Below, piece by piece: positions 9,970-64,000 of a DNA stretch of 64,000 nucleotides. The position numbers and the translations under genes are program-made. How positions within the stretch are numbered: position 1 is the stretch's first letter; every line of letters begins with the position of its first letter. Under the pieces are notes generated by a model. The model saw only the letters and a program-made list of their open reading frames with translations, had not been told where the DNA came from and did no database searches. The stretch spans positions 34,906,001 through 34,970,000 of the forward strand of contig NW_027361687.1 in the NCBI RefSeq assembly GCF_039654945.1, written 5' to 3'. This DNA is from Dendrobates tinctorius (taxonomy: Eukaryota).

Positions 9970-25278
<15,309 letters not shown>

Positions 25279-27584: not shown

Positions 27585-28788
27585 TCATTCCCTACTTAAC
27601 CCAAGAGTACAGGCCCCAACAACGGATCTCCATGCTGACGATCTGGCTAATTATTTCAAAGAAAAAACTGACCATATCCGACAGGAAATTATCTCCCAAT
27701 CACCTCATACCATGCACTGTCCTTCCTCCCCCACTGCATCTAGCTCACTCTCTGATTTTGAACCAGTCACAGAAGAAGAAGTAATCAGCCTCCTTGCATC
27801 TTCTCGCCCTACCACTTGCACCAGTGACCCATTTCCGTCACATCTCCTCCAGTCCCTTTCCCCTGCTGTCACCACTCACCTAACTAAAATATTTAACCTC
27901 TCTCTCTTCTGGTATCTTTCCGTCCTCATTTAAGCATGCCATCATACAGCCATTACTTAAAAAACCATCCCTCGTCCAAAACTGGGCCGCGAAATATAGA
28001 CCTGTCTCTAATCTTCCCTTCATCTCTAAACTCCTGGAATGCTTGGTCCACACCAGTCTTATCCGCTATCTCTCAGATAACTCTCTCCTGGACCCTCTAC
28101 AATCCGGATTCCGCTCTCTACTGAAACTGCCCTCACTAAAGTCTCTAATGATCTACTAACAGCTAAATCAAATGGTCATTACTCCATACTAATTCTCTTG
28201 GATCTCTCTGCAGCATTCGACACTGTGGATCATCAGCTCCTCCTCACTATTCTCCGCTCCATCGGCCTCAAGGACACCGTTCTCTCCTGGTTCTCCTCCT
28301 ATCTCTCTGACAGCTCCTTTACTGTATCTTTTGCCGGTTCCTCCTCCTCTCACCTTCCCCTTACTGTTGGGGTCCCCCAAGGATCGGTTCTAGGCCCCCT
28401 CCTCTTCTCCTTGTACACTGCCCCTATTGGTCAAGCAATCAGTAGATTTGGTTTCCAGTACCATCTCTATGCTGATGACACCCAATTATACGCTTCTTCT
28501 CCTGACATCACGCCAGCCTTTCTAGAAAACACTGGCGATTGTCTAAACGCTGTGTCTAACATCATGTCCTCACTATATCTGAAACTGAACCTGTCAAAGA
28601 CTGAACTCCTGGTGTTTCCTCCCTCTACTAACCTACCTATGCCCGACATTGCCATTTCCGTGTGTGGTTCCACTACTACTCCCCAGCAACATGCCCGCTG
28701 TCTTGGGGTCATACTTGACTCCGAGCTTTCATTTGCCCCCCCCACATACGATCACTGACTCGCTCTTGTCATCTGCACCTCAAAAACA
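27585..28788 (+). mobile_element. L2 LINE RT fragment, frameshifted
   Basis: [48 protein letters not shown] and LKLNLSKTE found across shifted frames. Confidence 0.9.
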
Positions 28789-34299: not shown

Positions 34300-35965
34300 T
34301 CCCAGGGGGGGGGGCTCTCCATATATGGGATAGATGCCATCCGCACCCTGGGGGGGCTCTCCATATATGGGATAGATGCCATCCGCACCCAGGGGGGGCC
34401 CCTCCACATATGTGATAGATGCCATCCGCACCCTGGGGGGGCCTCTCCACATATGGGATAGATGCCATCCGCACCCGGGGTGGTGTCTCCTCCATATATG
34501 GGATAGATGCCATCCGCNNNNNNNNNNNNNNNNNNNNNNNNNNNNNNNNNNNNNNNNNNNNNNNNNNNNNNNNNNNNNNNNNNNNNNNNNNNNNNNNNNN
34601 NNNNNNNNNNNNNNNNNNNNNNNNNNNNNNNNNNNNNNNNNNNNNNNNNNNNNNNNNNNNNNNNNNNCGGGGGGGGGGGGTCTCCTCCATATATAGGAGG
34701 TGCCATTTGCACCCAGGGGGGCCCACCATATACGTGTAAGATGCCATCCGCACCCGGGGGGGGGGGGGGCGCCTCCATATATGTGATAGATGCCATCCAC
34801 ACCCTGGGCGGGCCCTCCATATGCGTGATAGATGCCATCCGCACCCTGGGGGGGGGCCCCTCCATATTTGTGATAGACACCATACGCACCCTGGGGGGGC
34901 CCCTCCATATATGCGATAGATGCCATCCGCACCCCGGGGGGGGGGGGGGGGCCCTCCATATATGTGATAGACGCCATCCGCACCCTGGGGGGGGGGGGGG
35001 GCCCTCCATATATGTGATAGACGCCATCCGCACCCTGGGGGGGGGGGGGGGCCCTCCATATATGTGATAGACGCCATCCGCACCCTGGGGGGGGCCCTCC
35101 ATATATGTGATAGACGCCATCCGCACCCTGGGGGGGGGCCCTCCATATATGTGATAGACGCCATCCGCACCCTGGGGGGGGGCCCTCCATATATGTGATA
35201 GACGCCATCCGCACCCTGGGGGGCCCCCCATATATGTGATAGACGCCATCCGCACCCTGGGGGGGGGGCCCTCCATATATGTGATAGATGCCATCCAAAC
35301 CCTGGGGGGGGGCCCTCCATATATGTGATAGATGCCATCCACACCCTGGGGGGGGGGCCCCTCCATATATGTGATAGATGCCATCCACACCCTGGGGGGG
35401 GGGCCCCTCCATATATGTGATAGATGCCATCCACACCCTGGGGGGGGGGCCCCTCCATATATGTGATAGACGCCATCCACACCCTGGGGGGGGGCCCTCC
35501 ATATATGTGATAGACGCCATCCACACCCTGGGGGGGGGCCCTCCATATATGTGATAGATGCCATCCACACCCTGGGGGGGGGGGGGCCCCTCCATATATG
35601 TGATAGATGCCATCCACACCCTGGGGGGGGGGGCCCCTCCATATATGTGATAGATGCCATCCACACCCTGGGGGGGGGGGCCCCTCCATATATGTGATAG
35701 ACGCCATCCGCACCCTGGGGGGCCCCTCCATATATGTGATAGATGCCATCCACACCCTGGGGGGGGGCCCTCCATATATGTGATAGACACCATCCGCACC
35801 CTGGGGGGCTCCTCCATATATGTGATAGATGCCATCCGCACCCCGGGGTGGGGTCTCCTCCATATATAGGAGAGATGCCATCTGCACCCCGGGGATCTCC
35901 TCCATATATGTGAGCAGTATCATCAGCACCCTGGGGGTCTCCTCCATATATGTGAGCCCCCATGT
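34300..35965. repeat. About 44-50 bp minisatellite with a variable poly-G tract in SDHC intron 1
   Basis: Unit CCCTCCATATATGTGATAGA(T/C)GCCATCC(G/A)CACCCTG(n). Confidence 0.95.
34518..34667. other. Assembly gap (150 N)
   Basis: Run of N inside the minisatellite; the true array length is unknown. Confidence 0.99.
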
Positions 35966-41296: not shown

Positions 41297-44200
41297 CTAG
41301 CTGAAGAACCCATAACTACGGTTAGTTATAACAAATTATAATGATTATATCTATATATAAAGCTGTGTAGAGCCCCACCCACTCCACATAGCCACATTCA
41401 CTATAATATCCCACATCATCCCGTCAGCCAGAGCCACCGGACTACTACCCCTAGTATCCTACATCATCCCGTCAGCCAGAGCCACCGGACAACTACCACT
41501 TATATCCCACATCATTCCGTCAGCCTGAGCCACCAGACTACTACTCCTAATATCCCACATAATCCCATCAGCCAGAGCCACCGGATTACTACCCCTAATA
41601 TCCCACATCATCCCGTCAGCCAGAGCTACCGGACTACTACCACTAATATCCCACATCATCCCATCAGCCAGAGCCACCGGACTACTACTCCTAATATCCC
41701 ACATAATCCCATCAGCCAGAGCCACCGGATTACTACTCCTAATATCCCACATCATCCCGTCAGCCAGAGCCACCGGACTACTACCACTTATATCCCACAT
41801 CATTCCGTCAGCCTGAGCCACCAGACTACTACTCCTAATATCCCACATAATCCCATCAGCCAGAGCCACCGGATTACTACCCCTAATATCCTACATCATC
41901 CCGTCAGCCAGAGCTACCGGACTACTACCACTAATATCCCACATCATCCCATCAGCCAGAGCCACCGGACTACTACTCCTAATATCCCACATAATCCCAT
42001 CAGCCAGAGCCACCGGATTACTACTCCTAATATCCCACATCATCCCGTCAGCCAGAGCCACCGGACTACTACCACTAATATCCCACATCATCCCATCAGC
42101 CAGAGCCACCGGACTACTACTCCTAATATCCCACATAATCCCATCAGCCAGAGCCACCGGATTACTACTCCTAATATCCCACATCATCCCGTCAGCCAGA
42201 GCCACCGGACTACTACCACTAATATCCCACATCATCCCATCAGCCAGAGCCACCGGACTACTACTCCTAATATCCCACATAATCCCATCAGCCAGAGCCA
42301 CCGGATTACTACTCCTAATATCCCACATCATCCCATCAGCCAGAGCCACCGGATTACTACCCCTAATAGCCCACATCACCCCGTCAGCCAGAGCCACCGG
42401 ACAACTACCACTAATATCCCACATCATCCCGTCAGCCAGAGCCACCGGACTACTACCCCTAATATCCCACATCATCCCGGGAGCCAGAGCCACCGGACTA
42501 CTACCACTAATATCCCACATCATCCCATCAGCCAGAGCCACCGGACTACTACTCCTAATATCCCACATCATCCCATCAGCCAGAGCCACCGGACTACTAC
42601 CCCTAATATCCCACATCATCCCATCAGCCAGAGCCACCGGACTACTACTCCTAATATCCCACATCATCCCGTCAGCCAGAGCCACCGGACTAGTACCCCT
42701 AATATCCCACATCATCCCATCAGCCAGAGCCACCGGACTACTACCCCTAATATCCCACATCATCCCATCAGCCAGAGCAACCGGATTACTACTCCTAATA
42801 TCCCACATCATCCCATCAGCCAGAGCCACCGGACTACTACGCCTAATATCCCACATCATCCCATCAGCCAGAGCCACCGGACTACTACCTCTAATATCCC
42901 ACATCACCCCGTCAGCCAGAGCCACCGGACAACTACCACTAATATCCCACATCATCCCGTCAGCCAGAGCTACCGGACTACTACCACTAATATCCCACAT
43001 CATCCCATCACAGCCACCGGACTACTACTCCTAATATCCCACATAATCCCATCAGCCAGAGCCACCGGACTACTACCCCTAATATCCCACATCATCCCAT
43101 CAGCCAGAGCCACTGGACTACTACCCCTAATATCCCACATCATCCCGTCAGCCAGAGCCACCGGAATACTACCCCTAATATCCCACATCATCCTGTCAGC
43201 CAGAGCCACCGGACTACTACTCCTAATATCCCACATCATCCCAACAGCCAGAGCCACCGGACTACTACCCCTAATATCCCACATCATCCAGTCAGCCAGA
43301 GCCACCGGACTACTACTCCTAATATCCCACATCATTCCATCAGCCAGAGCCACCGGACTACTACTCCTAATATCCCACATCATCCCAACAGCCAGAGCCA
43401 CCGGACTACTACCCCTAATATCCCACATAATCCCGTCAGCCAGAACCACTGCACTACTACTCCTAATATCCCATCAGCCAGAGCCACCGGACTACTACCC
43501 CTAATATCCCACATCATCCCGTCAGCCAGAGCCACCGGACTACTACCCCTAATATCCCACATCATCCCGTCAGCCAGAGCTACCGGACTACTACCCCTAA
43601 TATCCCACATCATCCCGTCAGCCAGAGCTACCGGACTACTACCCCTAATATACCACATCATCCCGTCAGCCAGAGCCACCGGACTACTACCCCTAATATC
43701 CCACATCATCCCGTCAGCCAGAGCCACCGGACTACTACTCCTAATATCCCACATCATCCCGTCAGCCAGAGCCACCGGACAACTACCACTAATATCCCAC
43801 ATCATCCTGTCAGCCAGAGCCACCGGACTACTACCACTAATATCCCACATCATCCCATCAGCCAGAGCCACCGGACTACTTCCCCTAATATCCCACATCA
43901 TCCCATCAGCCAGAGCCACCGGATTACTACCCCTAATATCCCACATCATCCCGTCAGCCAGAGCCAACGGATTACTACTCCTAATATCCCACATCATCCC
44001 ATCAGCCAGAGCCACCGGACTACTACCTCTAATATACCACATCACCCCGTCAGCCAGAGCCACCGGATTACTACCCCTAATATCCCACATCATCCCGTCA
44101 GCCAGAGCCACCGGACAACTACCCCTAATATCCCACATCATCCCGTCAGCCAGAGCCACCGGACTACTACCCCTAATATCCCACATCATCCTGTCAGCCA

Positions 44201-46866
44201 GAGCCACCGGACTACTACCCCTAATATCCCACATCATCCCAACAGCCAGAGCCACCGGACTACTACCCCTAATATCCCACATCATCCCGTCAGCCAGAGC
44301 CACCGGACTACTACTCCTAATATCCCACATCATTCCATCAGCCAGAGCCACTGGACTACTACTCCTAATATCCCACATCATCCCAACAGCCAGAGCCACC
44401 GGACTACTACCCCTAATATCCCACATCATCCCAACAGCCAGAGCCACTGGACTACTACCCCTAATATCCCACATCATCCTGTCAGCCAGAGCCACCGGAC
44501 TACTACTCCTAATATCCCACATCATCCCAACAGCCAGAGCCACCGGACTACTACCCCTAATATCCCACATCATCCCGTCAGCCAGAGCCACCGGACTACT
44601 ACTCCTAATATCCCACATCATTCCATCAGCCAGAGCCACCGGACTACTACTCCTAATATCCCACATCATCCCAACAGCCAGAGCCACCGGACTACTACCC
44701 CTAATATCCCACATAATCCCGTCAGCCAGAACCACTGCACTACTACTCCTAATATCCCATCAGCCAGAGCCTCCGGACTACTACCCCTAATATCCCACAT
44801 CATCCCGTCAGCCAGAGCCACCGGACTACTACCCCTAATATCCCACATCATCCCGTCAGCCAGAGCTACCGGACTACTACCCCTAATATCCCACATCATC
44901 CCGTCAGCCAGAGCTACCGGACTGCTACCCCTAATATCCCACATCATCCCGTCAGCCAGAGCCACCGGACTACTACCCCTAATATCCCACATCATCCCGT
45001 CAGCCAGAGCCACCGGACTACTACTCCTAATATCCCACATCATCCCGTCAGCCAGAGCCACCGGACTACTTCCCCTAATATCCCACATCATCCCATCAGC
45101 CAGAGCCACCGGATTACTACTCCTAATATCCCACATCATCCCGTCAGCCAGAGCCACCGGACTACTACCCCTAATATCCCACATCATCCCATCAGCCAGA
45201 GCCACCGGACTACTACCTCTAATATACCACATCACCCCGTCAGCCAGAGCCACCGGACAACTACCCCTAATATCCCACATCATCCCATCAGCCAGAGCCA
45301 CCGGATTACTACCCCTAATATCCCACATCATCCCATCAGCCAGAGCCACCGGATTACTACCTCTAATATACCACATCATCCCGTCAGCCAGAGCCACCGG
45401 ACTACTACCCCTAATATCCCACATCATCCCGTCAGCCAGAGCCACCGGACTACTACCCCTAATATCCCACATCATCCCGTCAGCCAGAGCTACCGGACTA
45501 CTACCCCTAATATCCCACATTATCCCGTCAGCCAGAGCTACCGGACTACTACCCCTAATATCCCACATCATCCCGTCAGCCAACGGATTACTACTCCTAA
45601 TATCCCACATCATCCCATCAGCCAGAGCCACCGGACTACTACCTCTAATATACCACATCACCCCGTCAGCCAGAGCCACCGGACTACTACCCCTAATATC
45701 CCACATCATCCCGTCAGCCAGAGCCAACGGATTACTACTCCTAATATCCCACATCATCCCATCAGCCAGAGCCACCGGACTACTACCTCTAATATACCAC
45801 ATCACCCCGTCAGCCAGAGCCACCGGACTACTACCTCTAATATCCCACATCACCCCGTCAGCCAGAGCCACCGGACAACTACCACTAATATCCCACATCA
45901 TCCTGTCAGCCAGAGCCACCGGACTACTACCACTAATATCCCACATCATCCCGTCAGCCAGAGCCACCGGACAACTACCCCTAATATCCCACATCATCCC
46001 ATCAGCCAGAGCCACCGGATTACTACCTCTAATATCCCACATCATCCCGTCAGCCAGAGCCACCGGACAACTACCCCTAATATCCCACATCATCCCGTCA
46101 GAGCCAGTAAAAGTAGAATAGTGAAATTGCACAGAAACATGGTTCACTAAGATCCCAGGTTTTCTACTGATCAGGCTGATATTCTCACTTATCTGCCACC
46201 ATAAATATCACAGTCATGCTTTTCGCCAATGGACAGGCAGAAACCTTATACATTAGTACAGTAGAGAAACCTGCACACACATTTTCATGCACCGTCAACT
46301 TGTCATTTGTCCGGCTGAGTTGCTCATGGATGTACAGCATCTGTATGCAGTATAGTATCATATTTAATGGGTTGTTATGGGAAAAGCATTACGTGTTATA
46401 TGGGTATATTCAGGTGAATTATGGGGAAAGTAGCACTTTAAAAAAAGTCACAGCATCAGAGCACAGTAACACATCAATAATGCATAAAAGTGTCTGTGAG
46501 AAAATATTAAATCCACATGACATTTAATATGTGCACTTTCCTACATTCATGTTTGTCACTTAATGATACCACATGGGAGGGGGGATTCATTTATGTCATG
46601 TACTCACTGCTCCTTTCTGGGGGACAGACGATGGCTGGATCTTATGTTCCTGGGGATGCTAGATTTCTCCCACCATGTCAGTGTCTACTGAGGTGTTGTC
46701 AAGTGGGAAAACTTGCGCATAGCAACCAATCACAGCTCAGCTACTTTTAACCAGCTCTGGTGAAATGAGAGATGCTTAGTCATTGGCTGCAAGGAAAACT
46801 GTTGGTCATAGCAACCAATCACAGCTTAGCTACACACACACACACATTGATTTTTATATGTAGAGA
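41297..46866 (-). mobile_element. Non-autonomous Helitron carrying a long minisatellite, inserted in an L2 3' tail
   Basis: On minus, A|TC at 46866 and CTAG|T at 41297, with no TSD. Removing it restores ATTATTATTATTTA-TATAGCACCATT, an L2-like tail. Confidence 0.72.
41405..46105. repeat. 48-bp minisatellite
   Basis: Unit CTAATATCCCACATCATCCCGTCAGCCAGAGCCACCGGACTACTACCC, close to 100 copies. Confidence 0.97.
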
Positions 46867-52211: not shown

Positions 52212-52364
<153 letters not shown>

Positions 52365-52379
52365 TCAGATAAAAAAAAT

Positions 52380-55043
52380 AACACTGCCCCCTAGGAACAA
52401 AAACGCCTATAATACTGCCCTTATGTAGAAGAATATAACTGCTATAATACTGCCCCATGTACAAGAATAAAACTACTATAATACTACCCCTATGTACAAG
52501 AATATAACTACTATATTACTGCCCCTATGTACAAGAAAATAACTACTATAATACCGCTCCTATGAACAGGAATATAACCACCATAATACTGCTCCATGTA
52601 CAAGAATATAACTACTATAATACTGCCCCTATATACAAGAATATAACTATTATAATACTGCCCCTATGTACAAGAATATAACTACTATAATACTGCCCCT
52701 ATGTGCAAGAATATAACTACTATAATACTGCCCCTATGTACAAGAATATAACTACTATAATACTGCCCCCTATATACAAGAATATAACTACAATACTACT
52801 CCTAAGTACAAGAGTATAACTACTATAATACTGCCCCCTATATACAAGAATATAACTACTATAATACTACTCCTAAGTACAAGACTATAACTACTATAAT
52901 ACTTCCCCTGTGTACAAGAATATAACTACTATAATACTGCTCCTATGTACAAGAATATAGCTACTATAATACTGCCCCTATGTACAAGAATATAACTACT
53001 ATAACACTGCCCCCTATGTACAAGAATATAACTACTATACCACTTCCCCCTATGTACAAGAATATAACTACTATATTACTGCCCCCTATGTACAAGAATA
53101 TAACTACTATAATACTGCCCCTATGTACAAGAATATAACTGCTATAATACTACCCCTATGTACAAGAACATAACTACCATATTACTCCTCCTATGTACAA
53201 GAAAATAACTACTATAATACTGCCCCTATGTACAAGAAAATAACTACTATAACACTGCCCCATGTACAAGAATATAACTACTATAACACTGCCCCCTATG
53301 TACAAGAATATAACTACTATAACACTGCCCCCTATGTCCAAGAATATAACTACTATAACACTGCCCCATGTACAAGAATATAACTACTATAATACTGCTC
53401 CTATGTACAAGATTATAACTACTATAATACTGCTCCTATGTACAAGAATATAACTACTATAATACTGCCCCCTATGTACTAGAGTATAACTACTATAATA
53501 CTGCCCCCTATGTACAAGAATATAACTACTATAATACTGCTCCCTATGTACAAGAATATAACTACTATAATACTACCCCAATGTACAAGAATATAACTAC
53601 TATAATACTGCCCCCTATGTACAAGAATATAACTACTATAATACTGCTCCCTATGTACAAGAATATAACTACTATAATACTACCCCAATGTACAAGAATA
53701 TAACTACTATAATACTGCCCCCTATGTACAAGAATATAACTACTATAATACTGCCCCCTATGTACAAGAATATAACTACTATAATACTGCCCCCTATGTA
53801 CAAGAATATAACTACTATAACACTGCCCCCTATGTACAAGAATATAACTACTATAATACTGTCCCCTATGTACAAGAATATGACTACTATAATACTGCCC
53901 CTATGTACAAGAATATAACTACTATAACACTGCCCCCTATGTCCAAGAATATAACTACTATAACACTGCCCCATGTACAAGAATATAACTACTATAATAC
54001 TGTCCCCTATGTACAAGAATATGACTACTATAATACTGCCCCTATGTACAAGAATATAACTACTATAACACTGCCCCCTATGTCCAAGAATATAACTACT
54101 ATAACACTGCCCCATGTACAAGAATATAACTACTATAATACTGCTCCTATGTACAAGAATATAACTACTATAATACTGCCCCTATGTACAAGAATATAAC
54201 TACTATGCCCCCTATGTTCAAGAATATTGTCATGGTTAGGACATGGTTAATGTCCTGTTCTGACAGGGTTAACATTGCCGGCCTCTCTTTGGATCTGGGA
54301 GGGGTATTTATGCTAACTCCATACTGGCATTCTCTGTCAGTTATACTGCTATTCTGGTGTGTCTGACCCCTGGTGTGTGTGTACTCTGCATTGTTTGTTT
54401 GCTTCCCGTGTATGACCCGGCTTGTTCCTTCACTCTGTACTCCGTCTCTCGTTTTTGGTACCATTGTCTTTTCCGGTTCTGACCTCCTGGCTTGGCTATC
54501 GTTACTCCGTTACAGTTTACCCCTATTGTACCGTCTAATACCTGTTCTGGTTTTCTGATCTATTGCTACGTCCTGACTATTCTTTCTGTCTAAGCCCTTA
54601 GGTACTGTCCTGCTATCTCGTGCTTTGACCCGGCTTGATCTGGTGTCTGTCTCTGTCTATGCTCCTTGGTAACATTGTCCTGTAGTTACCCTTCTAGGAG
54701 TTTCCCTGCAGCTCCTAGCTCTGTGGAGCTTAGGCCACGCCCCCAGCAGTCACGTGATTCAGGTCCTGGAGCATGCATTGTCACCACTGCTGCTCGCTCC
54801 GCAGGATCTTTGTGCACCGTCTTTGTACTCAGGACACGCGCCCTGGCTCAGTGAGCAAGTGCAGTGCGGTGTTCCTGACAAATATAACTACTATAACACT
54901 GCCCCCTATGTACAAGAATATAACTACTATAATACTGTCCCCTATGTACAAGAATGACTACTATAATACTGCCCCCTATGTACGAGAATATAACTACTAT
55001 AATACTGCCCCCTATGTACAAGAATATAACTACTATAATACTG
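52380..55043. repeat. 35/36-bp minisatellite in the PCP4L1 intron (interrupted by a solo LTR)
   Basis: Unit ACTACTATAATACTGCCCCCTATGTACAAGAATATA. Confidence 0.97.
54228..54880. mobile_element. Solo LTR (653 bp)
   Basis: TGTCA...TGACA termini with an exact 5-bp TSD AATAT (54223-54227 and 54881-54885). Confidence 0.88.
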
Positions 55044-55081
55044 CCTCCTAGCTGTGAGGTTGTGTGTCAGTGGTTCTCCTG

Positions 55082-57865
55082 ATGTCTGGAGCAAGCCCAG
55101 GGAGTGGCCACCCTGGGCGGGGAAGCTCCCCTGGCAAGGCCCAGGCTTCCCGGCCTACACTGGGACTAGGCTCTCAGGCTTCTACTAATGGGAATGTTAA
55201 TCCCAAAGCCGCTGTGAGTCCAGTGAATGCAGCGAGTCAAAGCTGCAGCAGTTCTATGAAGAAAGAAACAGTTGTGAGTAAACTTTTGGGAGGAAAACCT
55301 TCTCCAGTTCCAGCAAAGAAGCCAGAAGGAAAAGTGTCAGTGAGTGATGGAAACCAGCAGAATGTGAAGTCTTGTAGCTCCCCAGTCAGTCAGCAGCTCC
55401 TGCCAGGTGCACAGGTGAGATCGGCCCCAGCTGTGCAGATCACCTCTGCTGCTTCCAGGCAGAGACGGACGTCTTTGGAAAGGCAGACAATGCAGGAGAA
55501 CCTACAGCAGCATGGCAGTATGGCGCGGTCAGGACGCACACGGTCACAGTCAGGTGGCAGCGATAAACCTGCTGCGGAGCCTGCATCCAGCCAAGGGGCC
55601 ACAAAACCATCTATGGTGGACCCGCACAAGACAGGATTCAAAACCCCTGTACCCGTGGTCAAGACTAAGCCTGTGGAGCCGGCGCGTGCACCCGAGCTGC
55701 AGCTAGCGGATGAGATACCGGGACTTGTCCGAAAACTGGGTGAGTTACAGCAGCAAAAAAAAGCGCTGCAAATGGAGGTAGACTTCATCTATAGTCTAAA
55801 GACCGCTAATCCTGCCAGTAATGAGGCGTATGACCTGAGACTGAACACACTGGGTGTACAGCTGGCGAGTGTTGTGCAGGACACTGAGTCTGTGCTGGAG
55901 AGCATGGGGCCCCTGGCAGAGACCTACAGGAACCGCGAGCGGTTCGCCTCCTATAAGCAGGACTGTGCTGTAGAGGCCAGGACCCCTGATGTTCAGGACG
56001 GGACCCCCCAGCAGCGGACACGGCCAGTGTTACAGGCTGCCCGCTTCTGCTTCCAGGAGGGGAAACAGCTGCAGCAGCAGGCAGCTCAGTGTGAACAGGA
56101 GCATACACTTCAGACTGCAGCAGAGGCACCACAGGTCCCAGAATGCCCCAAACAGGAGCAGGACAGTGTATGTGAGACTATTTGTGCTGATGAGGCAGCC
56201 GAGTGTGAACAGGAGCATACACTGCAGACTCCAGCAGAGGCACCACAGGTCCCAGAATGCCCCACACAGGAGCAGGACAGTGTATGTGAGACTGTTTGTG
56301 CTGATGAGGCCGAGGCTGAGGCTGAAGCACAGACTGTGGCTGGGGATGCTGTGCCCATGGGGTCGGGGGTTGGAGGGGTTTCATATTCTGTATTGGACGT
56401 CGCACTGTCTGATGATAATGATGCTGCTTATGATAATGTGCATGATATGTGTGATTATCCCCCTTTGCCATCTAGTCCACAAGGTGTGACATCCCCCCCT
56501 GCAGGCCCTCTCCCTGTCAGTCAGCCCAGTGTGACCCGGCAGGTGCCCCCCAGGAATGCCTGGAGCCGCGGCGCCCCATCCTTCACTTCCAGCGCCAGGT
56601 ACACCGGCCAGACATTCAAGCGCATTAATGTGGTGCGGTTTAAATACATAGGTGCCAAGGAGGATCTGCCACAACGCAGGTATGTGGTGAGAGAGCTGCT
56701 CTGCGGCCAGATGGGGTTTGTGGCAAATGAGATACTGGCAGTGTCTAATCTTCAGGACAGGCAGGGCTACGAGGTCAGCTTCAAGCTCATGTCTGACCTG
56801 GATAGATTCTGGGCCAATTACCCCAAGTTCAGAGATGCTGAGGGCTGGAATAAGTTTGTGTTGGTTCCTATCTCCAGGCCAGACACTGTCACAGTGAATA
56901 TCACCTTCTGGAATGAGGCCGTTCCTCCACAGGACATCGAGGTGTGGCTCCGGAGACACTGTGACCTCGTCTCTGGACTCACCAAGGTCAGAGATGAGGA
57001 TGGTATCTGGACAATGGGGTGGCGGGTCTTGGTAAAATTGCGGCAATGTAATAACATCACTGCCCACTTACCCAACTCCTTCTTCATTGGGAGGGAGAAG
57101 GGAAGGTGTTATTATCCCGGGCAACCCAGAAAGTGCTTCAAATGTGGTGGGAAAGGTCATCTGGCTAACGCCTGTACTGTGGTGAAGTGCAGTCTGTGTG
57201 GGGCAATCGGCCATGTCGCTGCAGACTGCCGGGACGTCAGGTGCAACCTCTGTGGTAAGATGGGCCACCCTCACAGGGACTGTCCAGATGCCTGGCACAA
57301 CATCTGCAGAGTCTTCCCTGATGAGTTAGTGATGGCAGGGGCAGAGGCTCAGGAGGATGAGGATGTGGTGGCAGGGACACATGAGGAGGAGTGTTTAATG
57401 TCAGGAGAGATGTTGACCAGCTCAGATGCCCACCAGGAGTCCACTCAGGCAGCACCAGAGAAGCAGGGTGCAGAGGGGAACATGGAGGTCGTCCATCAGG
57501 TCCAGCAGCCTCAGATAGCCCCCCCTTCAGCATCGCTGTCTGTATCTGATGACTGGAACATTAATAATAATAAAAGGAAGAAAAAGAACACATCCTCCCG
57601 TAAACCTGAGGCAGAATATGACACTGGTCAGAGTGCTAGTAAGAAGGTTCAGAATTCTGCAGGAGTGATGGTCGTGTCCAACAAGTATGGAGTTTTATCT
57701 GACTCCAATGGTGACGATTATGAGGAAGAGTTGAGGAAAGTTGATGCTGAGTGTGACAGGGACATAGAGGACCATCCCCCACCAAAGCGGAAGCCCTTAT
57801 CTGTAGACCCTCAGGTAGAGTCTGACATGGACACCAGTGGTGGACAGAACATCTCTGACTCATGA
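55082..57865 (+). CDS. Retrotransposon ORF1 (gag-like; coiled coil, RRM-like region, 3 CCHC knuckles; ZCCHC3-like)
   Basis: First ATG at 55082. CFKCGGKGHLANAC, CSLCGAIGHVAADC and CNLCGKMGHPHRDC; no internal stops. Confidence 0.9.
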   Translation: MSGASPGSGHPGRGSSPGKAQASRPTLGLGSQASTNGNVNPKAAVSPVNAASQSCSSSMKKETVVSKLLGGKPSPVPAKKPEGKVSVSDGNQQNVKSCSSPVSQQLLPGAQVRSAPAVQITSAASRQRRTSLERQTMQENLQQHGSMARSGRTRSQSGGSDKPAAEPASSQGATKPSMVDPHKTGFKTPVPVVKTKPVEPARAPELQLADEIPGLVRKLGELQQQKKALQMEVDFIYSLKTANPASNEAYDLRLNTLGVQLASVVQDTESVLESMGPLAETYRNRERFASYKQDCAVEARTPDVQDGTPQQRTRPVLQAARFCFQEGKQLQQQAAQCEQEHTLQTAAEAPQVPECPKQEQDSVCETICADEAAECEQEHTLQTPAEAPQVPECPTQEQDSVCETVCADEAEAEAEAQTVAGDAVPMGSGVGGVSYSVLDVALSDDNDAAYDNVHDMCDYPPLPSSPQGVTSPPAGPLPVSQPSVTRQVPPRNAWSRGAPSFTSSARYTGQTFKRINVVRFKYIGAKEDLPQRRYVVRELLCGQMGFVANEILAVSNLQDRQGYEVSFKLMSDLDRFWANYPKFRDAEGWNKFVLVPISRPDTVTVNITFWNEAVPPQDIEVWLRRHCDLVSGLTKVRDEDGIWTMGWRVLVKLRQCNNITAHLPNSFFIGREKGRCYYPGQPRKCFKCGGKGHLANACTVVKCSLCGAIGHVAADCRDVRCNLCGKMGHPHRDCPDAWHNICRVFPDELVMAGAEAQEDEDVVAGTHEEECLMSGEMLTSSDAHQESTQAAPEKQGAEGNMEVVHQVQQPQIAPPSASLSVSDDWNINNNKRKKKNTSSRKPEAEYDTGQSASKKVQNSAGVMVVSNKYGVLSDSNGDDYEEELRKVDAECDRDIEDHPPPKRKPLSVDPQVESDMDTSGGQNISDS

Positions 57866-60800
57866 TGATGGCTATTACTCTGCTCTTTCTATATTGTGTT
57901 GTGATGGCGGGGTTCTCATTGACAGTGACCTCGAGCAATGTGAATAGCATTAAGCTGAGGAGAACTAGACACACGGTGTATGAACATCTCAAATATCTGG
58001 ACACAGATGTCATCTTCCTGCAGGAGACACGACTGACATCTCTGGGGCTTATGAGAGAGGCTGAGAGGGAATGGCGGTCCGGTCCTTCTTTCTGGTCACT
58101 GGCTGTGGAGCCTTACGCCGGGGTCGCTGTCCTGTTTAACACCAATGATGTGACTGTGCATAGGATGACGGAGGTGGTCATGGGAAGATGTCTGGTCCTG
58201 GAAGTCACTGTCCATGGGAGGCGACTCCGGCTTATTAACATCTATGGGCCACAGACAGTGACGGACAGGATCCAGCTGTTTAATGACGTCAAGCCTTACC
58301 TCTTCACTTCTCTTCCAGTGGTGATGGCGGGGGACTTTAATGCCATAATGACATCAGGTGACAGCTCCTCGGGCAGGGCAGTGACCAGGGACGGTAAGGT
58401 CCTACATAACGTTATAATGCAGGCAGGACTGACCGACGTTTTCACACAGGGTGGGCGACAGCCAAAATTCACGTATTCATGTTCCAACAGGAGCAGTAGG
58501 ATAGATTTTGCTTTTGTCAGTCCTACTGAGGCTGTCGGCGCCCTGAGTGAGAAGGTCGTCCCTTACTCTGATCACCTCGCCTTGTCCTTCTCTTTGGGTT
58601 CCTCTAACCGTCCGGACATTGGTAGAGGGTTGTGGAAGCTTAATTCCAGTCTCCTGGATGATGCCTATGTTCAGAGCCGTGTTCACTCCCTTATCCAGCT
58701 TCATCTAGACAGGGTTGACTTCTATGACAACATGACCGACTGGTGGGAGGACGTCAAGGAGGATATCAGATCCCTCTTAAAGAGACTGTCAGTTAATAAA
58801 GGGAGGAATAAGTACAGCCAGTACCTAAAGCTGCGCAAAGAATTGGAGTCACTGTATTCGGCGGGCGGGGATGACAAAGTGAAGATCGACCGGCTGAAAT
58901 CTGAGATAAAGCAGTATCAGTATAGCAGGTATACCTCCCTGGTTCTTGAACGGGATTATGGGTCCTTAGGGGCCCCTGATCCCTTTGAGAATTGCAGGGA
59001 GAGGGTGGCCAAAAAAATGGTCACGGGTCTCATTGACTCCCAGGGTGTATTGCAGGATTCACGGGAGGGTATCCTGGAGGTGGTGAGATCTTACTATGCT
59101 GACTTGTTTCAGAGGAAAGTTTTGGATAAAGATAAGATGGCTCAATTCTTGGAGGCAACTCCAGCGCCTGATACTAATGATCTGGACTTTTCTCCTTTGA
59201 CAGCAGAATTAACGGTGGAAGAAGTTAAGGAGGCTATTGATAAGTTATATCTGAAGAAGGCACCAGGTCCAGATGGTATAACGGCAGAATTTTATAAGAA
59301 ATTTAGAGACCTCCTGGCTCCAATTCTCGTGGATGTGTATAGAAATTGTCTAGAAAATCACCTGATGCCTCCATCCATGAGAGTGTCCTCGTTAATTCTG
59401 CTGTCTAAAGGTAAAGAGCCGAGTGACATCAAGAACTGGAGGCCGATTGCCCTCTTGAATGTGGACAGGAAGATTCTAGCAAAGATCCTATTTTCTAGAT
59501 TAGTCTGTTTGTCCCCGGCACTGTTGGCAGGCTCTCAGTTTGGCACAGTAAAAGGGCGGAACATCTCTGGAGCAGTCATCTCGATACGAGAGATGTTTGA
59601 GAGATGTAAAGCTCTGCGGTGTGGGAGATATGTTGTTAGTCTGGACCAGGCTAAAGCCTTTGACAGGGTTGATCATGACTATCTGTGGGCCACTTTGTCA
59701 AAGTACGGTATTCCGGGACAATTTGTGGATTGGGTGAAGACGTTGTACAGAGAGGCGGTGAGCTTTCCTCTGATTAATGGTTGGCAGGGTGACACTTTTG
59801 GAGTTGGGGCGGGGGTGAGACAGGGTTGCGCAATGAGTCCGCTCCTGTATGTTTTTGCCCTAGACCCGTTTCTGAGGTCACTGCAGGAGTGCGATTTTCA
59901 GGGGGTGCCGGTCCCCCACTGCCCGCCTCTGAATGTTGTTGCCTATGCGGACGATGTGACGCTGGTGATCTCCAATCCTCGTGAGGTGCAGATGTTATCT
60001 GCGTCCATCAGAAGCTACTCAGAGGCCTCCGGGTCTCTGGTCAACCTTGAAAAGAGTCAAGCTCTGTGGACATTAGATACTGAGCCCAGCTTTGATCTGC
60101 CGCAGTTTTCCAAAGCCTCCACCCATATTAAGATCCTAGGGGTTAAATTTGGGAGGGATGATAATGCCACGCTAAATTGGGAGGAGAAATTGGAAACCGG
60201 AAATGCAAAGGTTCAACGATGGAAGAACTGGAGGCTGACCTACAGAGAAAGGGTCACAATGTTGAAGACTTACCTGGTCCCCGTTTTCTTGTATGTCTCT
60301 GTCATTTTCCCTTTACCAGAATCTTTCTCAGCGAGGCTCTTCAGCCTGTTCTTCCAGCTCTTGTGGGGGAATAGGATGAACCTGATAAAGAGGGGAATAA
60401 CATACCTACGGCGGAGAGAGGGTGGGCTGGATATGTTGAATCCAAGGGTTTTCTTTGACTCCTTGTTTCTAAAGGTGAATTTTGGGAACATGGACTCAAA
60501 CAGTAGCTCCCTGTGGGTAAATAGTATCAGGTACTGGATATTGCCTTTTGCAGAATCTTGGGTGCGAGGCGGCAGTCTCAAGAGGAGGAGATGGACAGGT
60601 GACCACCTCCCCCAGTATCTGGACTATGGTCTGAAGTGTGTTAGGAGGTGGGGACTGGAGAGGTCTTACATTGAGAGCAGTACGAGAAGAGACCTGTATG
60701 CTCGTGTATGTAGGACTTTCTTCTACTCTCCACTGGCCCTGAGAGATTGTGTCACCACCACCCTGCAGGAAAGCCTTAGGTTCCTAAACGGGAAACGGCT

Positions 60801-61266
60801 TCCTCCTAAACTGTTTGATGTCACTTGGCTTTCACTGCATAGTCGGCTCTTTGTCAGAGGGAACCTGAAACATCTGTGTGTCTCTGATCGGAATTGTCCC
60901 CTTGGTTGTCAGCAGGAGGAAACTATGGAGCACTTTATATGTGATTGCTGGGGAGGGAGGAAGATCTGGGAGGAAGTGTCAGATAATCTAAAAATCCCCA
61001 GACTGCGGACTCTAAAGTATCCTGACATAATCTATGGTGTCCCCTCCACTGTTAGTAACATCAACAGAGAGACAATGTACATTATAATCAGTGTCATCAA
61101 ATACTATCACTGGCACATGAGAACCCGGGTGTCACTGCACAATGAGCCGTTCGATCACACCGCTGCCGCCAATCAGGTTATGTCAGAACTCCGGTGGATA
61201 AAATCACTAGAAGTTGGAAGGAGTCCAAGAAACATAACGTTATGGAGAAACGTAAAATTCAGTTAG
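57862..61266 (+). CDS. Retrotransposon ORF2 (APE endonuclease, reverse transcriptase, C-terminal Zn motif)
   Basis: NVNS, FLQET, AGDFN, SRID, SDH; KAPGPDG, NWRPIALLN, DQAKAFD, GVRQG, YADD; CPLGC..E..EHF..C; 1134 aa uninterrupted. Confidence 0.95.
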   Translation: MMMAITLLFLYCVVMAGFSLTVTSSNVNSIKLRRTRHTVYEHLKYLDTDVIFLQETRLTSLGLMREAEREWRSGPSFWSLAVEPYAGVAVLFNTNDVTVHRMTEVVMGRCLVLEVTVHGRRLRLINIYGPQTVTDRIQLFNDVKPYLFTSLPVVMAGDFNAIMTSGDSSSGRAVTRDGKVLHNVIMQAGLTDVFTQGGRQPKFTYSCSNRSSRIDFAFVSPTEAVGALSEKVVPYSDHLALSFSLGSSNRPDIGRGLWKLNSSLLDDAYVQSRVHSLIQLHLDRVDFYDNMTDWWEDVKEDIRSLLKRLSVNKGRNKYSQYLKLRKELESLYSAGGDDKVKIDRLKSEIKQYQYSRYTSLVLERDYGSLGAPDPFENCRERVAKKMVTGLIDSQGVLQDSREGILEVVRSYYADLFQRKVLDKDKMAQFLEATPAPDTNDLDFSPLTAELTVEEVKEAIDKLYLKKAPGPDGITAEFYKKFRDLLAPILVDVYRNCLENHLMPPSMRVSSLILLSKGKEPSDIKNWRPIALLNVDRKILAKILFSRLVCLSPALLAGSQFGTVKGRNISGAVISIREMFERCKALRCGRYVVSLDQAKAFDRVDHDYLWATLSKYGIPGQFVDWVKTLYREAVSFPLINGWQGDTFGVGAGVRQGCAMSPLLYVFALDPFLRSLQECDFQGVPVPHCPPLNVVAYADDVTLVISNPREVQMLSASIRSYSEASGSLVNLEKSQALWTLDTEPSFDLPQFSKASTHIKILGVKFGRDDNATLNWEEKLETGNAKVQRWKNWRLTYRERVTMLKTYLVPVFLYVSVIFPLPESFSARLFSLFFQLLWGNRMNLIKRGITYLRRREGGLDMLNPRVFFDSLFLKVNFGNMDSNSSSLWVNSIRYWILPFAESWVRGGSLKRRRWTGDHLPQYLDYGLKCVRRWGLERSYIESSTRRDLYARVCRTFFYSPLALRDCVTTTLQESLRFLNGKRLPPKLFDVTWLSLHSRLFVRGNLKHLCVSDRNCPLGCQQEETMEHFICDCWGGRKIWEEVSDNLKIPRLRTLKYPDIIYGVPSTVSNINRETMYIIISVIKYYHWHMRTRVSLHNEPFDHTAAANQVMSELRWIKSLEVGRSPRNITLWRNVKFS

Positions 61267-61494
61267 AAAATATGATAATGTTTTTTTGTTTTTTTTTTTG
61301 TGTTTTTTTTTTTGTGTTTTTTTTCCCTCTAACTTTTTTTTTCCATCCTCAGGTGTGGACACTTTAATTTATTGATGAATATGATCTGATTATTAGTGCT
61401 GTGTATATATTACCTAAGTGGTTTGTGTTTTGTAATACTGGATGATTTTTGTTTTATTATAATTGTATTTATGTTTGGGTTTTATAATAAAAAT

Positions 61495-61852
61495 TGCCCC
61501 CTATGTACAAGAATATAACTACTATAATACTGTCCCCTATGTACAAGAATGACTACTATAATACTGCCCCCTATGTACGAGAATATAACTACTATAATAC
61601 TGCCCCCTATGTACAAGAATATAACTACTATAATACTGTCCCCTATGTACAAGAATATGACTACTATAATACTGCCCCCTATGTACAAGAATATAACTAC
61701 TATAATACTGCCCCTATGTACAAGAATATAACTACTATAATACTGCCCCCTATGTACAAGAATATAACTACTATAATACTGCCTCCTATGTGCAAGAATA
61801 TAACTACTATAATACTACCCCTATGTGCAAGAATATAACTACTATAATACTG
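61495..61852. repeat. 35/36-bp minisatellite between the two retrotransposon copies
   Basis: Same unit as 52380-55043, about 10 copies. Confidence 0.95.
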
Positions 61853-64000
61853 CCTCCTAGCTGTGAGGTTGTGTGTCTGTGGTTCTCCTCATGTCTGGAG
61901 CAAGCCCAGGGAGGGGCCACCCTGGGCGGGGAAGCTCCTCAAGCAAGGCCCTGGCTTCCAGGCCTACACTGGGAGGAAACTCCCAACCTTCTCATGTGGA
62001 TGGAAATCCTAGAGTTGCCTCTGGGGAAAATAAACCTCAGCATGGAGAAAGATCATGTGTTGAAGCTCAGTACAGGAAAGAAAGAGGAGAAAGCTTTGTT
62101 TGTCTGCAAGGATGTTGCAGTTAAACAGCCAGGTCAAGGCAAACAGTGTCCAGAGCCTGGAAGGAAATCCCAGAAGACATCTTCTGCTGAGAACCTGAGT
62201 GCTGGAGGGCAGGTGGCTGAACAGAAGGTGAGGCAGAGTCCATTACCAGCCTCAGGTGTGCAGCTCACTCCAGGCAGACAGAGATGGACATCTCTGGAGA
62301 AGCAAACACTCCAGGAGAACCTTCAGCTGAGACATGTGGTGACCAGCATGGCAAACTCTGGACGCACGAGATTGCAGGATGGTGGCAGCTGTAAAAGTGT
62401 TGCGGAGGCTGGAGCCACAAAACCAGCGATATTAAAACCAAGGTGTCACCCCCTAAAGCAAGACCCCAGAAGGAGCCGCCGCGTGCCCTGGAGCTACAGC
62501 TGGCAGAGGAGAGACCAGAACTGGTCAGGAGGATTGGTGAGGTACAGCAGCAGAGGAATCTTCTGCAAATAGAAATTGACTGCATTTACAAGGTGAAGGC
62601 TGCTAATCCTGGGGATCTCCCTGTATATGACCAGAGACTGAATGCACTGGGGGTAGAGCTGGCGACTGTGGTGCGGGACATGGACTGTGTGCTGGCGAAG
62701 ATGGGGCCCCTGGCAGAGACATATAGGAACCAGGAGCGGTTTAGGTCCTACACGCAGGACTCTGCTGGCTCCCGCACAGACATTGTCCCAGGTGGGACCT
62801 GGCAGCAGGTACGGCAGGTGCTGCAGCCCGCTAGCTTCTGTTTCAAGGAGGGTCAGATACTGCACCAGCAGCCGAAACTACCTGCGGCAGACCCCAAGCA
62901 GGAGCAGGAGGCTCAGATCCCAGCGGTACCACAAGTCCCAGCATACCCAGCACAACAGCAAGACAGTGGACATGAGACTGCATCTACTGTTGGTGTCCAG
63001 GAGAGCACTAATTCTGGGGATATTGATACTGTTCATGTGGGGTTGGGGGCTGAAGGGAGTACAGAGTCTGTGGTGGACATTGCGCATCCTTATGACTCTA
63101 TTGAGATTGATGATGATGATGATAATAATATGCAAAATGTCTGTGATTTCCCCCCTTTGGTTTCCAGCACACAAGGTGCAACAGGCCCCTCCGCTGCAGA
63201 CCCTCGCCCTGTCAGTCAGCCCACTGTGGCCGCACAGGTCCCTCCCAGTAATGTTTGGAGCCGCGGTGCTCCGTCCTTTACCTCCGGCGCCAGTTACACC
63301 GGGCAGGCATTCAAAAGGAGGAATGTGGTGCGGTTCAGGCACAGAGGTGCCAAGGAGGACCTGCCAGACAGGAGGCTGGTGGTCAGGGAGCTCCTGTGCC
63401 GCCAGATGGGGTTTGCGTCGGTTAATATCTTGGCGGTCATCAATCTGCCAGACAGACAGGGCTATGACATCAGTTTTAAGCTCATATCTGATCTGAACAG
63501 ATTCTGGGCCAATTTCCCCAAGTTCAGGGACGCTGATGGCTGGAATAAATTCAGCTTCATTCCAATATCTAAGCCAGATACCGCCATGGTTAATATCTTT
63601 TGGAATGAGGCTGTTCCCCTGCAGGACATTGTGGTGTGGTTCCGGAGGCATTGTGACCTTGTCTCCGACCTCACCAAAAACAGGGATGAGGAAGGTATAT
63701 GGACCGGTGGGTGGAAGGTGCTGGTGAAACTGCACCAGCACAACAATATCACGGCTCACTTACCCAACTCCTTCTTTATCGGGAGGGAGAAGGGGGTTTG
63801 CTTCAACCCTGGGCAGCCACGAAAGTGTTTTAAGTGTGGTAAAGTGGGTCACCTGGCAAACACCTGTACCGTGGTAAAGTGCAGCCTGTGCGGGGAAGTC
63901 GGCCACTTAGCGGCAGATTGCCAGAACATCAAGTGCAACCTCTGTGGGGAGATCGGCCACCCTCACAGGGACTGTCCAGATGCCTGGCACAATATATGCA
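61853..64000 (+). mobile_element. Second, diverged Tx1-like copy (5' end and frameshifted ORF1; runs off the window)
   Basis: Same 5' start CCTCCTAGCTGTGAGGTTGTGTGTC. ORF1 homology switches frame twice, with a stop at 62122-62124, then reads open from about 62480 through three CCHC knuckles. Confidence 0.9.

Follow-up and report, generated by a model that had tools for sequence, protein, structure and literature searches.

A candidate four-unit target-site duplication flanking an intact L1/Tx1-type LINE in a satellite array of Dendrobates tinctorius

The stretch of DNA analysed here (the window) comprises 64,000 nucleotides of Dendrobates tinctorius (NCBI RefSeq assembly GCF_039654945.1, contig NW_027361687.1, positions 34,906,001 to 34,970,000 of the forward strand). 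An intact L1/Tx1-type long interspersed nuclear element (LINE) of 6451 bp, recognised by its open reading frames (ORFs), Pfam domains and sequence, lies at 55044-61494 within a single ~2.2-kb array of a 35/36-bp satellite, which was delimited with Tandem Repeats Finder (TRF) and by unit parsing. The LINE, like all features below unless otherwise stated, is on the forward strand, and it is flanked on both sides by an identical 144-bp stretch of satellite, as shown below. This repeat could be a target-site duplication (TSD) of four whole satellite units made upon insertion, or a block of satellite that was already doubled when the LINE arrived; judged from the sequence of the locus, the former is probably to be favoured, modestly.

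The left part of the array (52385-54227; ~51 units, from TRF, unit parse and periodic runs) runs into a 653-bp insert resembling a solo long terminal repeat (LTR), which was defined by sequence and word depth, has TGTCA...TGACA termini and lies inside one satellite unit (54228-54880) between two copies of a 5-bp TSD, AATAT (54223-54227 and 54881-54885). Excising this insert restores a normal 36-bp unit, and thus the arrays on either side of it are one array. Of 23 public sequencing runs, which are stored as short contigs, four were compared over 54400-56400, their contigs being 85-435 bp long and breaking within the satellite. The word depth of the insert in these four runs was 10-100 times that of the LINE, and the insert is probably the solo LTR of a very abundant family. 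The satellite exceeded the LINE in word depth by a factor of ~100-1000 and is thus a genomic repeat, not a leader private to the LINE. Downstream of the insert, the unit parse placed the end of the split satellite unit, U(-1), at 54886-54899, where it ends in AACAC, a variant that sets the left limit for any pre-existing periodicity. The left copy of the duplication (54900-55043), the LINE and the right copy (61495-61638) follow in turn, and the remainder of the array, six units plus TG by TRF and unit comparison (61639-61852), runs up to the start of a second LINE copy. Together with the 144-bp block, this remainder forms a local three-unit higher-order repeat (TRF period 107 at 95%), such that unit pairs near the site show 0-2 differences at an offset of three units, as against 2-4 at an offset of four. 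At the left array edge (52360-52416), the satellite is preceded by GATAAAAAAAATAACAC and then a degenerate first unit, TGCCCCCTAGGAACAAAAACGCC..., and the array may have started at the A-rich tail of some sequence.

The LINE opens with a short satellite-like head, CCTCCTA (55044-55050). ORF1 is open from 55064, with its first in-frame ATG at 55082 and its end at 57865, the 5' untranslated region (UTR) being 38 nt, and ORF2 (57862-61266) shares an ATGA overlap with it. The 3' UTR (61267-61494) terminates in AATAAAAAT without a poly(A) run and contains a 44-bp T-rich, TTTTTTTGTTTT-like microsatellite (61281-61324). Another repeat, an in-frame 114-bp tandem duplication in ORF1 (56079-56310; 38 codons, two copies, 94% matches), is an internal repeat of the variable N-terminal half of the protein. 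Pfam profiles matched Exo_endo_phos in ORF2 at residues 24-238 (profile positions 2-225 of 225, E=6.9e-14), RVT_1 at residues 523-763 (E=1.4e-35) and zf-RVT at residues 976-1036, while ORF1 matched RBD_ZCCHC3_1st (E=7.7e-21), RBD_ZCCHC3_2nd (E=1.7e-26) and zf-CCHC twice. As judged by the domain content of ORF1 and of ORF2 with its reverse transcriptase (RT), 55044-61494 is an L1/Tx1-type non-LTR retrotransposon. An exact-sequence look-up of ORF2 gave no match; in a word-based protein search, the best match to ORF2 had 71% identity and lay on a 5.5-kb Logan contig without flanks, the closest proteins of the collection thereafter being unnamed Xenopus tropicalis reverse transcriptases at 51-55% identity. 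Both ORFs are open across 6.2 kb and retain full-length endonuclease and RT domains, which indicates that the insertion is young. Relative to the most frequent family sequence among the contigs, the LINE shows 9 differences in 435 bp, or ~2%. Of 20 family variants in the contigs, 11 fall at third codon positions (p=0.04), a bias which suggests that this distance represents variation among active lineages and not decay after insertion.

Direct comparison showed that 54900-55043 and 61495-61638 are identical across 144 bp, with the identity extending no further on either side. The repeat stops at 55043 and the LINE begins at 55044, and the LINE stops at 61494 and the repeat resumes at 61495, with nothing intervening; the identity claimed in the original prediction is thus exact and flush with both ends of the element. 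The length had been put at about four satellite units, and the unit parse of both copies indeed gave 36+34+36+36 bp, plus a TG that opens the next unit. The 34-bp unit of the block owes its length to a 2-nt deletion, GAATGACT, and the third unit contains TACGAG. These two variants had been noted as not found elsewhere in the array, and across the whole window the GAATGACT unit occurs only at 54950/61545 and the TACGAG unit only at 54979/61574; the TGTCCCC unit is found also at 53859, 54000 and 61636. Since every other in-register alignment of the block with the array reached only 85-96.5% identity, the exact match represents copying by descent and not a chance similarity of units. Past the 144 bp, the similarity runs on for 7 bases with 2 mismatches, through the satellite-like head of the LINE, and the TG at the joint can be assigned to either side. 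The extent is therefore better given as 142-144 bp than as the 144 bp originally proposed, which holds as the span of the exact match.

The second, diverged copy of the LINE is present as its 5' part, which runs off the window (61853-64000) and was defined by alignment, tblastn and its joint sequence. Its ORF1 has frame changes and 74-78% DNA identity to that of the first LINE, and the two ORF1 proteins are only ~60% identical. The first ~120 nt of the two copies, however, are ~93-95% identical, and both copies have the same satellite/element joint, in which ...ATAATACTG is followed directly by CCTCCTAGCTGTGAGG. Contigs across this joint (55038-55155) were present in all four runs compared, which come from three studies. 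Given that diverged copies share both joint and head, and that contigs bridge the joint in four runs, the register of the 5' joint is a property of the family, and this LINE family joins the satellite at one fixed phase. The 3' end of the first LINE, the one 3' end in the window, likewise adjoins the satellite in phase (61494/61495). The satellite units beside the first LINE read TGCCCCC or TGTCCCC whereas both LINE copies read TGCCTCCTA, and thus the short satellite-like head travels with the element. The joint-bridging contigs in the four runs (X1, X19, X20 and X22) all begin at 55038, which suggests that they branch where the preceding unit varies between AAT and AAC; in that case, different satellite variants precede many copies of the family. 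A tblastn search of the window with ORF1 and ORF2 found the second copy and two unrelated RT fragments, and no other match. These fragments, at 1390-1797 on the reverse strand and 28174-28503 on the forward strand, are short, have 27-28% identity to the LINE ORF2 and represent relics of other LINE families between the arrays. The analysis of the duplication is based on the filled allele of one complete family copy, and as neither of the two possible empty alleles contains a 31-letter word that the filled allele lacks, it is the structure of the locus and not the contigs that bears on the origin of the repeat.

The contender that carries most weight against an insertion-made duplication, and to which we give about one chance in three, is that a tandem four-unit block had arisen earlier by slippage or unequal exchange, and that the LINE then inserted at its midpoint with an ordinary duplication of 0-2 bp. 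Such doubling is a real possibility because the same array contains perfect tandem duplications that hold no element, one of period 141 (53832-54143; four units, two copies) and one of period 107 (53485-53754; three units, ~2.5 copies), and a repeat of 142 bp is typical of the native duplications here, which range from 82 to 144 bp. The register of the joint would follow automatically, since the LINE always lands at one unit phase. A null expectation was obtained by removing the LTR-like insert and the LINE from the array and modelling, at each of the 59 in-phase sites, an insertion of the ordinary kind with a duplication of 2 bp; owing to the 141-bp and 107-bp duplications already present, 3 of the 59 (5%) would give an exact apparent TSD of 109 or 143 bp. 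Midpoints of this kind number three in ~50 units of the targeted array and four in ~335 units of six other minisatellite arrays in the window, so that the targeted array has the densest perfect three- to four-unit duplications of the seven, these representing two events only. The likelihood that a pre-existing four-unit duplication is struck at its centre is roughly 2-6%. The absence of any difference between the 144-bp copies fits a young insertion, but a very recent native duplication would fit it equally well. The published record also weighs against an insertion-made repeat: in human L1, the one relative with good sampling, extremely long TSDs in HeLa cells accompany 5'-truncated inserts, full-length inserts having TSDs of 10-17 bp (PMC2912911), and each LINE otherwise has a characteristic TSD length of its own (PMC4245944). 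The 144 bp seen here far exceeds the 10-17 bp of full-length human L1, which is another family than the present LINE. On these grounds a TSD of at least 100 bp on a full-length copy is rare a priori, with a prior that is low, perhaps 0.5-5% for a periodic target. In contrast, an earlier doubling would require two recent events whose positions coincide with a chance of about 1 in 20, against one event for a TSD, and the boundaries of the block speak against it. As a tandem duplication has no sharp edges, its joint may fall anywhere in the stretch, beyond two full copies, over which the sequence equals itself one period away; we defined this stretch as the joint window. In the four native perfect duplications of the window this measured 30, 56, 19 and 131 bp, whereas a doubling of the 142-bp block before the arrival of the LINE would have left a joint window of 4 bp, AC^TG, coinciding with the LINE joint; a difference between AACAC and AATAC closes it on the left, and one between TGC and TGT on the right. 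If the repeat is instead a TSD, these 4 bp mark the position of the nicks, and the units next to the site happen by chance to make them so few, a window this small being found in 5% of unit pairs at an offset of four. In an earlier doubling, the number of duplications would scale with window size or rise faster than it, and with this weighting only ~0.6-1% of the possible native four-unit duplications containing an in-phase site look like the block. This figure was taken from the empirical distribution of unit pairs, a uniform-mutation model having overstated the case given that satellite variants cluster at the unit boundary. By our own arithmetic the likelihood ratio for a TSD is ~4-7 if native duplications are placed uniformly, and more if they need homology. 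Moreover, the native duplications keep to the higher-order period of their surroundings. Around the LINE this period is three units, and the four-unit block is out of phase with it, whereas a homology-driven exchange would have followed it. The joint-window argument is itself tempered by its four native duplications and by the clustering of variants near the unit boundary. Combining these figures gives odds of roughly even to 2:1 favouring a TSD. Thus, of the four-unit TSD proposed in the original prediction, the 4-bp AC^TG boundary and the out-of-phase block are in favour, while the native 141- and 107-bp duplications keep prior doubling alive, and we give an even chance that the repeat is a genuine, insertion-made TSD of 142-144 bp of a satellite-homing LINE.

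Three further explanations, namely later conversion, a flank carried along with the element, and misassembly, are unlikely even when taken jointly. In the first of these, a short duplication would have been followed by gene conversion between the satellite flanks, which are 6.4 kb apart. The flanks are direct repeats that are ~92% similar, and in this alignment the homology ends at the ends of the element, so that a conversion tract could have gone no further. However, the tract would have had to fill exactly all of the available homology, the rare variants would be expected once elsewhere as a source or remnant and were found nowhere else in the window, and the array otherwise keeps a unit divergence of 8% with no sign of conversion; we therefore regard homogenisation as very improbable. 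The satellite could alternatively be part of the element, as a 5' UTR monomer array or as read-through flank, in which case the left block would have come with the RNA. Each of the two LINE copies follows directly on satellite through the same joint, and with a 5' UTR of just 38 nt a promoter may lie upstream. Against this, a left block derived from a donor would not match the right block at two window-unique variants, the array reaches 2.2 kb upstream and has an LTR-like insertion of its own, the satellite far exceeds the element in word depth in the four runs, as mentioned above, and the 3' end of the LINE abuts satellite in phase. The satellite as the LINE's own 5' UTR array was rejected on these four points, and a carried-along flank is, if anything, a shade less credible than conversion. 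An assembly artefact, in which the block was placed twice by the assembler, is the least probable of all: satellite DNA is error-prone in assemblies and the public runs are shallow at this single locus, but 6.4 kb of sequence other than satellite lies between the copies, both joints are ordinary joints of the family, distinctive anchors (the LTR-like insert and the second LINE) lie within a few hundred bases of both flanks, and reads longer than ~7 kb, if these underlie the assembly, would span the whole structure.

If the repeat is an insertion-made TSD, it could have arisen by target-primed reverse transcription. The bottom strand would be nicked at the fixed site between ...ATAC and TGCCCCC and would prime cDNA synthesis from the 3' end of the RNA, while the top strand would be broken 142-144 bp, that is four satellite units, downstream and not within the same unit. 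The 5' end would then be joined in register, most probably with the cDNA end copied from the head (TG)CCTCCTA annealing to a unit start on the exposed top strand, and fill-in of both single-stranded copies would double the four units. We infer the order of the nicks, the annealing step and a usual duplication of 0-2 bp for the family. The two routes considered in the original prediction, an in-phase second nick and annealing within the array, would both produce a TSD. The sequences at the two cut positions, as read from the unit sequence, are asymmetric, so that one would not obviously expect the top strand to be recognised with the same sequence specificity. Joining by annealing is favoured by the head, TGCCTCCTA, which is conserved between copies in spite of the divergence of their ORF1 proteins. 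As such a head would be able to pair every 36 bp, any position of the top-strand break would yield a duplication of whole units. A precedent is provided by R1 elements that carry target sequence at the 5' end of their RNA, for which annealing of the cDNA has been proposed to give precise joints (PMC2718515). An explanation of the 144 bp by the length of a nucleosome or of an Okazaki fragment is speculation.

The significance of the locus depends on which of these histories is correct. If the duplication was made by the insertion, the locus provides a clean case from nature in which the second strand was processed 142 bp away from the first nick and the joint was nonetheless precise, full-length and in register; it would fit 5' joining through annealing of a short target-like head and not a fixed cut distance, and it would mean that site-specific LINEs can add units to the arrays that they target. 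Variant-rich satellites are among the few targets that reveal duplications of whole units. A broader proposal, that satellite-homing LINEs duplicate whole target units, with or without insertion, and so generate higher-order repeats and array growth, is conceivable but unlikely. In it, pairing of the head or cutting by the endonuclease at every unit would allow staggered breaks several units apart, whose repair would give in-phase duplications of multiple units; the high density of such duplications in the targeted array would accord with it, on the strength of two events. If, on the other hand, the block was already doubled, the locus combines ordinary satellite turnover with a known kind of homing LINE.

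The rest of the window is also rich in tandem repeats. At least nine minisatellite arrays, unrelated to one another and with unit lengths of 30, 31-36, 34, 35, 41, 44, 48 and 76 bp, make up a mosaic across positions 1-46101. One of them (10053-25182; 15 kb) is C-rich, with ~70% G+C and strong C skew, and another (41404-46101; 4.7 kb), built of 48-bp units, contains a perfect 144-bp periodic run of 275 bp. A run of N is present at 34518-34667.

Several systems offer comparisons with the present locus. Repeat-targeting LINEs are known in the Tx1 clade of the L1 superfamily, including Tx1L, which inserts in Tx1D, as well as Keno, Mutsu, Kibi, Koshi and the satellite-targeting Tx1 families (PMC4494074). 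The LINE described here resembles them in its ORF2, with an apurinic/apyrimidinic (Exo_endo_phos) endonuclease and RT, in its ORF1, with RNA-binding domains and CCHC knuckles, in its use of one fixed position in a repeated target, and in the occurrence of nested or tandem copies in the same array. It differs from them in that its target is a frog 35/36-bp satellite and in that the duplication spans four whole target units; in the literature searched, we found no published description of multi-unit duplications for repeat-targeting Tx1-clade families. The perfect duplication of three to four units (~107-144 bp) is also a feature of minisatellite higher-order repeats, such as those at 53832-54143 and 53485-53754. 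However, those native duplications contain no element, follow the local period and have joint windows of 19-131 bp, whereas the block considered here is split by a LINE, is out of phase and has a window of 4 bp.

Long TSDs of human L1 (those above 20 bp, termed L-TSD; Gilbert et al. and Symer et al., via PMC4245944 and PMC2912911) are similar in that the repeat is far above the norm, and they have been attributed to a distant second-strand break (PMC4245944, PMC2912911). In contrast to those cases, which were associated with 5'-truncated inserts and target rearrangements in HeLa cells (PMC2912911), the present LINE is full length, has a precise canonical joint and is flanked by a whole number of target repeats. 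In the Drosophila melanogaster group, R1 transcripts carry upstream 28S sequence, and alternative top-strand breaks give different alterations of the target (PMC2718515). The R1 target, however, is single in each rDNA unit and offers one annealing register, while a 36-bp array allows pairing every 36 bp, which would permit duplications or deletions of whole units.

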